Below, piece by piece: positions 60,180 through 63,480 of a stretch of 64,000 nucleotides of DNA (position 1 is its first letter; every line of letters starts with the position of its first letter). The notes below the pieces were generated by a model. It was not told the origin of the DNA. It saw nothing but the letters and a program-made list of their open reading frames with translations, and ran no database searches. Source of the DNA: Oikopleura dioica (Eukaryota > Animalia > Chordata); assembly GCA_907165135.1 (NCBI GenBank), contig OU015567.1, forward strand, positions 10,974,001 through 11,038,000, given 5' to 3'. A program made the translations under genes and the position numbers.

Positions 60180-63100
60180 TTATTTGCTCAACCCTCTTGC
60201 GGGCACTTTTAAATTATTGAACGAGAAATAAACTCGTTGATGCCTGTGAAACATTCTTTTAGTGGAACGTTGCTTTAGAAAGGGCCCGCTGTTTGAATCG
60301 CTTTTGCACCTGTGGATTTCGTTCCTGTAGTATTTTAGCGTCTCGTACTCGATCTCCGCCGGGGTTGCGCTGCAGCTGGCTTCTTCGCTATCGTCGGACT
60401 TATCCGCGCCTTGTGTAAAAAAGATTAAAAACAGGCGCTAGAACTCACCGTCTAGATTTTAATTGGCTTATAAGAATTTCCAAGAACTCCGAAAATCAAA
60501 AACCTCAAAGTTATCTTGAGAATGAGACGTTCTAAAATGAAGCTTCACCGGCTTTATGAAGGGTAAACCCGCTTTGCGTCATTTTAGCAATAAAATAATT
60601 TCGAAAGCATAATATGATAAGAAAAGATAGAATCTTATCATTACAAATTCAATATCGCCGTATGTTTACGAAACTCGCTTTTACGAAAAATGAAGTACTT
60701 ACATAATTGCTTGACAAGAATCTTGCGGATGATATTTATGATCAGCTCGACAAAGCCGAAAAAGGTCGCAGCCGAAATCCCCAAAAACAGGCCGAAGCAT
60801 CCTCCGAATGAAGTGACAATAAACTATTACGCGCTATAATACATCCCCTTTGCTCTAAGCTTAATTATTACTAATAGGTTATAACTATAGGGCCTTATAA
60901 CTAAGGGCCTATATTTTAGGGGTGCGGTAAGTTCATATTATATATAATCATTCAATTTATATGTCACTCGAGCCTCCAATGTCTGATAAATATCTGATGA
61001 ATGGGTACTCAGCATACTCTGCAGAAGTGTTTCGTTTTTGTTTCGAAACGTAAAGTATGAAATCATCGTCTGAAATTCGGAACACTTTTCCTTTGATCAT
61101 CAACTCGTTCGTTTCCATCGTAATTAATATCGAAGCAATGTCTTTCCAACGGTTCAAATTTGATTGCAGGTGAGTCAATAAGACAATTATAATTGTTGTT
61201 TTGAACAATTCCTACGTTGACTTCAGTATCGGTCGTAGTATTTATCCACTAATAAGATATAATCGTTTGATTGAAGAACACAAACAGATTTTGTTTTTAT
61301 CTCACCTTGTGCCCGTATTGAATCTGTTTGGAATGAGGCGTTGAATGATAGCAGTCCTTTTCTCTCCCGTTGATAAAACATAGACTTACTCAATTGAATG
61401 CAAGGAAGTACCGTTAAATTTAAGTTAAGGGCTTAAGTATCTCGCAAGTTTTAGTTGAAATAATTAATTGCTACCTGTCTGTTTGGTCCAGGGGTCTAAA
61501 TTCGCAGTGCGAATTCGCTTTATTGCGAAGCGATGCGAAGCGAAGCGAATTCGCTTTCGCTTCGCTTCGCACTGGAGAGCAGAATTCGCTTCGCTTTCGC
61601 TTCGCAAAAATTCCCAAATTTTCGCATAGATTTTCGCACATCAAGCGACTTTGCTTGATCAGAATGATCTTTATCAACAGGGCTTATCTAGAATCGAAGA
61701 TGATCTCCTCTCCTATCGAGCAAGGGTGACCATTCGGGCAAGAAATCGTCGATTGGCCATCCGAATGCCCGGCCGAAATGAAGGGCCAAGAGTCGCACCG
61801 TGCGAATGCCCGGTCGAGTTGGTGATGGGATTTTCAATAGATAAAGGTTTGAAAAATAAGTTTCGAGAGGCTTTTGATTCAGTAAGAGGAGCAAGAGAGC
61901 AAAAATAAGTGTAAAGAATGCGAAATTTAAGAATTTTCCTCGGCGCGGGCTAGACTGAAATGCCCGAAAGCGCTGAATTCCCCGAAAGTGCCGAACTTGC
62001 CAAAATGCCCGCTTTTGCCCGGCCAAATTTAAGGGGCTGAGAATGCCCGGCAGAACACATTTTGCCCGGAAATTGTCCGTTTTCCCCGACTTCCCGATGC
62101 CCGAACGGTCACCTCCGCTATCGAGTTTGTTACTAACTTGGAATTATCAACAGTTAGATCCACCATTCGGCTTATATTGACGAGCTGAAAAAGGTACAAT
62201 AACAGATTTTTTTGTTATTTTCTGCTTCAAAAATAGGTTTTTGAAATCATCTTTGCTTTTGAGTGGCTGATTGTTAAAGATTCTTGCCGAGAATGCGTTT
62301 CAATTCAAGCGAAAAAATTTTCGCTTTTTTTCGCAATTTTCAATGATATTTCGCTTCGCTTTCGCTTCGCACATGGGCGAAGAATTCGCTTCGCTTTCGC
62401 TTCGCAAAAAATTTGAAAAAATGGTTCGCTTTCGCTTCGCTTTCGCACTAGGATTTCGGCTGATATTTAGACCCCTGTTTGGTCAATAATGTTAAGTTCT
62501 TGTTTGTACAAGTTTGTACTTAGGAGAGCATTTATCAATGATCATGGATCGTTTTGAATTCCGGTTGATATTTTAGCCATCAAATTGATCAAAAATTGTT
62601 ATAAAATTTAGAATTCGTTCTGTTAGTGATTTTTAATTGCCGAAAATGGATGAAACTGGCAATTTTTCTTGGCGATTCTATGATGCACCAATTAATGGCT
62701 CTTTTATAATTATTAGTAAATTATATTTCACTACACAAGTGATCTTCTTATCAACAGCTCCTTATCGCACTTACAATTCACCCGGTCAACCTTCGATTTG
62801 AACGCCAGCAACTCTCGTTTTACGCAGCTTATGTGGTCTGTTCTTTGAGGTTTTCATAATGATTATTTACGAATTAATAACGAAAGTGAAAATTCGCGGA
62901 GTTTCAGATTGCTTTTTCAATAAATTTGGCAAAATTGGATCTACGCACTGCGAAAGCATTAGAGCTAGAATTTTGATAAATATTGCTTTCTCACGCGGAG
63001 GCAGAAAATGAGTTCTGTTTCTTGGGGTAGATTTTAAATTTTCTAATTTCATATCTCGTCCACGTGCGGAACCAAACTAACTCGATTTTGATGTTTTTCA

Positions 63101-63480
63101 AGCTTTTTACAGTCTCAAACCAAATCATTATTATCACGAGAATCACCCTCTAAAGTTTAGAGTCTAAACTTTATAATCTAATGCATACATTCTAACTAAC
63201 ACTCTAAGCAAGAAATTTTGATAAAATTCTTTCGCATAATTTTGTTTTGTTCTAGTTCGCGGTATTTAGTAGTAACCTCGACGAAAAGAGAGCAGTTGCG
63301 ATAGAGGCCGTCAGGTATTTTATCCGGGAAGAATGGAGCTAAGAATGTCCTCGAGTGAAAAATACTTTCTTCTGGAAATTTGAGTACTTTACCTTTACAG
63401 TTGCACAGAGCAAGTGTCCTTTTTGATGGTGAACACAGTTTATCTAATTTCTGTGAAAATTTTATGTTTTGAACCATCAA
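60180..63480 (-). CDS. ENaC/degenerin/ASIC-family amiloride-sensitive channel (3' part; 5' end may lie beyond 63480)
   Basis: Spliced reading LPCIQLRL...DIASILITMETNELMIK|EYAEYPFIRYLSDIG|GCFGLFLGISAATFFGFVELII matches the family pre-TM2/TM2 signature (LxDIGGxxGLFxGxS). Cytoplasmic tail exons at 60490-60180. Confidence 0.85.
61489..62477. mobile_element. 989-bp hAT/P-like MITE with TTCGC subterminal repeats, inserted in an ENaC exon
   Basis: 13-bp TIR CAGGGGTCTAAAT / ATTTAGACCCCTG; 7-bp TSD TTTGGTC (61482-61488 and 62478-62484), or 8 bp if the terminal G is assigned to the target. Confidence 0.9.
61721..62117. mobile_element. 397-bp hAT-type MITE nested in the 989-bp element
   Basis: 8-bp TSD CTATCGAG (61713-61720 and 62118-62125); inverted GGTGACC(A/G)TTCGGGCA near both ends; internal TGCCCG repeats. 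Confidence 0.85.

Follow-up and report, generated by a model that had tools for sequence, protein, structure and literature searches.

How Oikopleura gained its many lineage-specific, often non-canonical introns is a standing question, and a transposable element lying within a coding exon poses it at a single site: could such an element be removed from the transcript as an intron, or does it simply break the gene? In the Okinawa assembly of Oikopleura dioica (OKI2018_I69), the median intron is 49 bp long and 11% of introns have boundaries other than GT/AG (PMC8008620), and the O. dioica spliceosome is permissive, accepting G*-AG introns (PMC4122922). In a relative of this species, Fritillaria borealis, MITE-derived non-canonical introns have been described (PMC11282704, summarising Henriet et al. 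2019). The stretch of O. dioica DNA analysed here, which we call the window, is 64,000 nt long and contains, on its minus strand, a 989-bp element that interrupts a short exon of a putative ion channel gene. To our knowledge, the combination of transposon insertion and permissive splicing has been shown for Fritillaria and several protists, and not directly for O. dioica.

The locus provides a clean test, with a young insertion, single-copy flanks, a conserved exon and an empty state in related lineages, and the products of exact removal, one-codon deletion, exon skipping, frameshift and retention are mutually distinguishable. If exact GG-AG removal is true, intron birth has been caught in the act in O. 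dioica, a chordate; if the element is not spliced, the locus is simply a null allele of one among many channel paralogues. We consider it reasonably probable that the element is a young non-autonomous DNA transposon that inserted into a conserved 48-nt exon and segregates as a variant with several pre-mRNA fates, weighted towards loss of function. The structural part of this reading alone, that a real young transposon lies in a real coding exon, is in our judgement very likely.

The element and its family

Read on the minus strand, the site has the form ...TTATT GACCAAA (CAGGGGTCTAAAT ... ATTTAGACCCCTG) GACCAAA CAGACAG GTAGC, in which the parentheses enclose the element (Table 1). The terminal inverted repeats are complementary at 13 of 13 positions, and the GACCAAA target-site duplication is perfect (7/7). 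Because the host CAG that follows the downstream duplication is identical to the first 3 nt of the element, the direct repeat around the element is effectively 10 nt long (GACCAAACAG). The flanks of the element are single-copy in the genome, and the longest open reading frames within it encode at most 112 amino acids.

A search of the genome (64.28 Mb in 19 contigs) with the element as query returned 102 matches. The 20-nt terminus occurs 39 times at two or fewer mismatches, while its reversed control does not occur at all (0), and the structure is therefore not a product of chance. The matches define a family of ~40 copies with termini CAGGGGTC and a 7-bp target duplication. Nine full copies other than that in the window were checked; they are 1113-1232 bp long and have the same termini, flanked by 7-bp duplications of unrelated sequence, such that a constant 7-bp duplication and identical termini were found in 10 of 10 inspected copies, including the one in the window. 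The earlier note on this DNA had called the element a MITE, and these data bear out that it is a real non-autonomous element with terminal inverted repeats. MITEs are usually shorter than 800 bp and lack a transposase; the sizes of the copy in the window (989 bp) and of the family (1.1-1.2 kb) are owed to a nested 397-bp element. An autonomous partner or transposase was sought at four further termini and none was found; the sequences there proved to be short variants, a remnant of 35 bp and a copy with only one end. The short variants of the family are 654-669 bp long, and two of them bear duplications of ~7 bp.

The nested element also stands alone elsewhere in the genome, and it is common to other copies of the outer family (91-96% identity over query positions 1-828). 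It was therefore acquired before the copy at 62477..61489 transposed. The earlier note had taken the nesting as a sign of persistence, but since the nested element predates that transposition, the time for which the copy has resided at the exon site cannot be read from it. The insertion is young, judging from its perfect duplication and inverted ends and from the 96% identity of the nearest family relative over query positions 1-828. The scaffold of the Okinawan reference that carries it (C5) is 16.16 Mb and autosome-sized, which allows for heterozygosity of the sequenced animal at the site, and the insertion probably segregates as filled and empty alleles.

Other copies of the family occupy diverse positions. 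One (L011, G000:C1:14247800-14248912) carries the duplication CTGTCAG with GTAAC immediately after it (CAG|GTAAC) and is apparently inserted at a sequence resembling an exon/intron junction, and another (L007, G000:C1:8772528-8773745) lies within an internal (CCCTAA)n telomere-like array. The 35-bp remnant (L022, G000:C5:9943535-9943569) consists of nothing but the two inverted ends, fused head to head (CAGGGGTCTAAATATCAGCCAAATTTAGACCCCTG), and represents the family reduced by deletion to its minimum. The inverted end, CAGGG|GTCTAA, contains a GT, such that a weak canonical donor lies 5 nt into any transcribed copy, whether sense or antisense.

Table 1. Features of the interrupted gene and of the element, in window coordinates unless a locus is named
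Feature	Position	Strand	Remarks
Conserved upstream exon TDHISCVKRELL..CKCDKELL	62740..62853	minus	GA-AG intron next, ~226-229 nt long, to 62519
Intron after the CKCDK exon	62519 to ~62745; L017 ~955-1023; L018 ~760-862	minus (window)	
Interrupted 48-nt coding exon, 5' part, 41 nt (..QTCTNKNLTLLTK)	62478..62518	minus	starts after acceptor CCTAAG
Upstream target-site duplication GACCAAA, 7 bp	62478..62484	minus	codons ..G ACC AAA
Non-autonomous TIR element, 989 bp	61489..62477	minus	family copies 1.1-1.2 kb; this copy has an internal deletion
5' terminal inverted repeat CAGGGGTCTAAAT	62465..62477	minus	holds GG donors (62474, 62473) and GT at 62472
Nested 397-bp element	61721..62117	minus	8-bp duplication CTCGATAG at 62125-62118 and 61720-61713
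3' terminal inverted repeat ATTTAGACCCCTG	61489..61501	minus	
Downstream target-site duplication GACCAAA	61482..61488	minus	
Interrupted exon, 3' remainder CAGACAG	61475..61481	minus	ACAG (61478-61475) is the 4-nt micro-exon of the exact route
43-nt GT-AG intron	61432..61474	minus	modelled, with comparison to L017 and L018
20-nt exon ..ALNLNLT	61412..61431	minus	best-fitting model
55-nt GT-AG intron	61357..61411	minus	position shared with introns of L017 (GT-AG) and L018 (GC-AG)
Conserved exon DCYHSTPHSKQIQYGHK (DCYHS exon)	61307..61356	minus	donor GTGAGA next
Conserved exon WINTTTD..	61248 onward	minus	common to Okinawan, L017 and L018 sequences
Conserved exon ..ITME..YPFIRYLSDIGG			no limits set; common to Okinawan, L017 and L018 sequences
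Pore-helix (TM2) exon CFGLFLGISAATFFGFVELI (CFGLFLGIS..)	60704..60801	minus	common to Okinawan, L017 and L018 sequences
293-nt GT-AG intron after the pore exon	60410-60702	minus	from diverged-lineage RNA (X12)

The insertion site and its host gene

The open frame at the site spans 16 codons in the Okinawan sequence, which is not significant on its own, and orthologues were therefore sought. A scan of JGI metagenome contigs provided two loci of related Oikopleura lineages (L017 and L018) that carry the same gene from its Cys-rich region through the pore helix, and the element is absent from the orthologous site in both. Between the CKCDK and DCYHS exons, each contains one continuous exon (FDHTNLILQENKDLTKKDRVCISSLIIMLN in L017, FEHALFIIQDRKNLTRTNSVSKSILIISLH in L018), in which the homologous stretch is free of stops over 49 and 45 codons, respectively, and the two exons end at one shared donor position, which is GT in L017 and GC in L018. 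The Okinawan sequence aligns to this exon as ..QTCTNKNLTLLTK|QT + ALNLNLT. Four codons upstream of the site is an NK[ND]LT motif in which the three sequences use three different leucine codons (TTA, CTT and CTA), as would be expected under constraint at the protein level.

In the Okinawan gene, the interrupted exon joins the CKCDK exon upstream in frame, via the GA-AG intron of 226-229 nt, and an in-frame path leads downstream across the 43-nt intron, the 20-nt exon and the 55-nt intron listed in Table 1 to reach the DCYHS exon. On this comparative evidence the insertion site is coding, as the earlier note had proposed, and the acceptor at 62518 and the 43-nt intron at 61474-61432, also proposed there, fit the in-frame model joining the conserved exons. 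The end that had been given to the downstream exon (a GTAAGT donor at 61389, with an 18-nt micro-exon) falls outside the conserved frame (KDCYHSTPHSKQIQYGHK); we replaced it with a GT donor at 61411 and an acceptor whose last base is 61357, which are consistent with that frame. An intron of 28 nt (61389-61362) was also considered and discarded as too short.

Since L017 and L018 have this exon in one piece, the 43-nt intron is specific to the Okinawan lineage, and on sequence comparison it is a gain in that lineage or otherwise a loss in the other two. The Okinawan ..ITME..YPFIRYLSDIGG exon has 72 extra stop-free nucleotides (61019-61090, minus strand) relative to L017 and L018, which is consistent with a hidden 72-nt GA-AG intron; because these 72 nt are missing from both orthologues, we dropped an initial reading of FILYV..DIGG as a conserved beta-strand region. 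In all three lineages, the intron after the CKCDK exon needs a donor other than GT to close in frame, namely GA or, under some models, GC, which suggests that this is a conserved position for a non-canonical intron.

The host gene had been identified as an ENaC in the earlier note. The pore-region motif GG-x-x-GL-x-x-G-x-S...E, preceded by L-S-D-I-G-G, is present as YLSDIGG together with CFGLFLGISAATFFGFVELI, and a comparison of the pore exon with the PDB returned only two sequences at E <= 10, both of them FMRFamide-gated Na+ channels aligned at TM2 (E = 0.37). The TM2 exon, as a single-exon query, scored 14.2 bits against Pfam ASC (PF00858), below the cut-off of 23.6 (E = 0.022), and the insertion locus is not among the 68 matches of a genome-wide scan for Pfam ASC. 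The data point, weakly, to a divergent DEG/ENaC-like gene. Protein-level searches added little: a whole-library search with the 105-aa neighbouring exon found one metagenomic fragment only (P0001), the contig of which (L016) ends upstream of the site; a word-based search with an 84-aa piece gave no match; and an exact-product look-up of two window ORFs gave no record.

Reads from two DNA runs (X1 and X5), one bulk RNA run (X12) and one single-cell RNA run (X9) were examined over the locus. Both RNA runs derive from a diverged lineage without the insertion allele, most reads being less than 90% alike and 915 of 917 X12 reads being only partly placed. The one informative joint in X12 connects 60703 to 60409 (6 mismatches in 14 nt) and supports the intron after the pore exon, so the protein continues into an acidic C-terminal exon, GADKSDDSEEAS.., and the orthologue in the diverged lineage is expressed. 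Neither RNA run contains a joint over the element, and runs from this lineage cannot test the insertion allele. The DNA contigs of X1 and X5 break at the element, and none among those listed bridges the filled or the empty site; the one contig that X1 has on the right flank differs from the assembly at 6 positions, and its alignment ends 21 nt short of the junction, leaving a further 24 letters unplaced. Read depth on the element itself derives from related repeats.

The diverged-lineage RNA has no depth over 62478-63138 or 61135-61468, which could be taken to mean that the element is intronic, or that the gene is a decaying pseudogene and its "exon" a chance open frame of 16 codons, a length without significance by itself, at a locus that Pfam ASC does not detect. 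Short diverged exons would, however, escape read placement at 80% likeness, and a chance frame is difficult to reconcile with the 45-49 codons open in the matching frame of L017 and L018, the conserved positions of the flanking introns, the synonymous changes at NK[ND]LT, the conserved exons to which the frame connects both upstream and downstream, and the open frames of every conserved exon in the Okinawan gene. We give this explanation little credence, and we continue with the reading of an insertion in a coding exon.

Fates of the interrupted transcript

The element sits between Lys and Gln codons, 7 nt from the donor of the exon, and if it is retained the computed translation reads TKQ-GSKYQPKS-stop, terminating 9 codons into the element. 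Two in-frame GG-AG escape routes had been proposed, and their arithmetic is correct at the level of sequence. In the first, removal of a 996-nt intron (62474..61479, GG..AG, GGGTCT..AAACAG) gives a computed mRNA identical to that of the empty site, and in the second, removal of a 1042-nt intron (62473..61432, also GG..AG) costs a single Thr codon. The GG donor is weak (CAG|GGGTCT), and the canonical GT at 62472, within the inverted end, rivals both GG donors and leads to a frameshift with either acceptor. Exact removal hinges on the chance CAG that follows the duplication and is not built into the family; for family members in general, it would need AG|G within the 7-bp target. Because the mRNA produced by the first route is indistinguishable from that of an empty allele, only homozygous carriers are informative.

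Could the locus be a nascent intron, in which the element is efficiently and exactly removed by the first route with help from the terminal stem, such that the allele is neutral and heading towards a fixed non-canonical intron? The computed restoration of the empty-site mRNA speaks for this, as do the 11-12% of O. dioica introns that are non-GT/AG, which are enriched among new introns (PMC8008620; PMC4122922), and the MITE-derived non-canonical introns known in Fritillaria (PMC11282704). The interrupted exon, moreover, already bears the 43-nt intron specific to the Okinawan lineage, and further inserts of this kind occur elsewhere in the gene. In the predicted RNA fold, the inverted ends pair in both the MFE and the centroid structures. 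Such pairing of the 13-bp ends would bring the splice sites to within ~10 nt of each other, yet it would bury the GG donor in the stem, with the GT competing one or two nucleotides away. Exact removal would also require either a 4-nt micro-exon or ordered splicing, and the family termini do not suffice for exact splicing, which takes either AGG in the target or, as at this site, a chance repeat. On balance we regard this outcome as unlikely, though by no means negligible, and we are slightly more doubtful of the version in which a ~1-kb segregating insertion leaves exactly as a GG-AG intron via the micro-exon or ordered splicing with the inverted ends zipping the splice sites together.

A different in-frame exit uses native splice sites only. 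The interrupted exon measures 41 + 7 = 48 nt, a multiple of 3, and skipping of the whole exon would therefore keep the frame. If the insertion ruins recognition of this exon, the upstream GA donor would be joined to the acceptor at 61432 with the loss of 16 residues from a stretch of low conservation whose length differs among the lineages. The tiny introns of O. dioica, however, suggest intron rather than exon definition, and the resulting intron of ~1.3 kb would be unusual for the species. We doubt that skipping is what the insertion chiefly causes.

We put substantial in-frame rescue of the insertion allele, by any route, at somewhat below an even chance. As parts of that rescue, exact GG-AG removal appears improbable, in-frame skipping of the whole exon perhaps marginally more so, and the one-codon-deletion route very improbable. 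A transcript that is mainly truncated or frameshifted, and thus loss-of-function, has in our estimate a little better than an even chance. Loss of function would be tolerable because the genome contains dozens of ASC-family loci and because the allele may be heterozygous. The locus is thus a good candidate for a nascent intron and, equally, a plausible null allele of one among many channel paralogues.

Comparison with known systems

P-element-like and other DNA transposon families generate a 7-bp target duplication and have short inverted ends starting with CA. The family described here resembles them in its constant 7-bp duplication and its short, perfect inverted ends starting with CA, and differs in that no transposase or autonomous partner was found for it at the four further termini searched.

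Huff et al. are said to have reported in 2016 that the introners of Micromonas and others are transposon-derived spliceosomal introns. The element in the window bears similarity to Micromonas introners and to the MITE-derived introns of Fritillaria in three respects: a short non-autonomous element with terminal inverted repeats lies, with its target-site duplication, inside a coding exon; the host spliceosome tolerates donors other than GT; and the element supplies one splice site while duplicated or repeated host sequence supplies its partner, such that removal can be exact. It differs from both in that its removal is known as a sequence possibility only, in a family of just ~40 copies, and in that its exactness is due to a chance 3-nt extension of the repeat rather than to the design of the family. 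Its candidate boundaries are GG-AG, in contrast to the AG-AC and AG-AT boundaries of Fritillaria, and at ~1 kb it is far above the median O. dioica intron of 49 bp. The locus is also comparable with an ordinary polymorphic exon insertion, that is, a loss-of-function allele, given its perfect duplication and ends, a nearest copy at 96% identity, lineages without the element, and a stop 9 codons in. What distinguishes it from such an insertion is an unusually permissive host spliceosome together with several in-frame exits.
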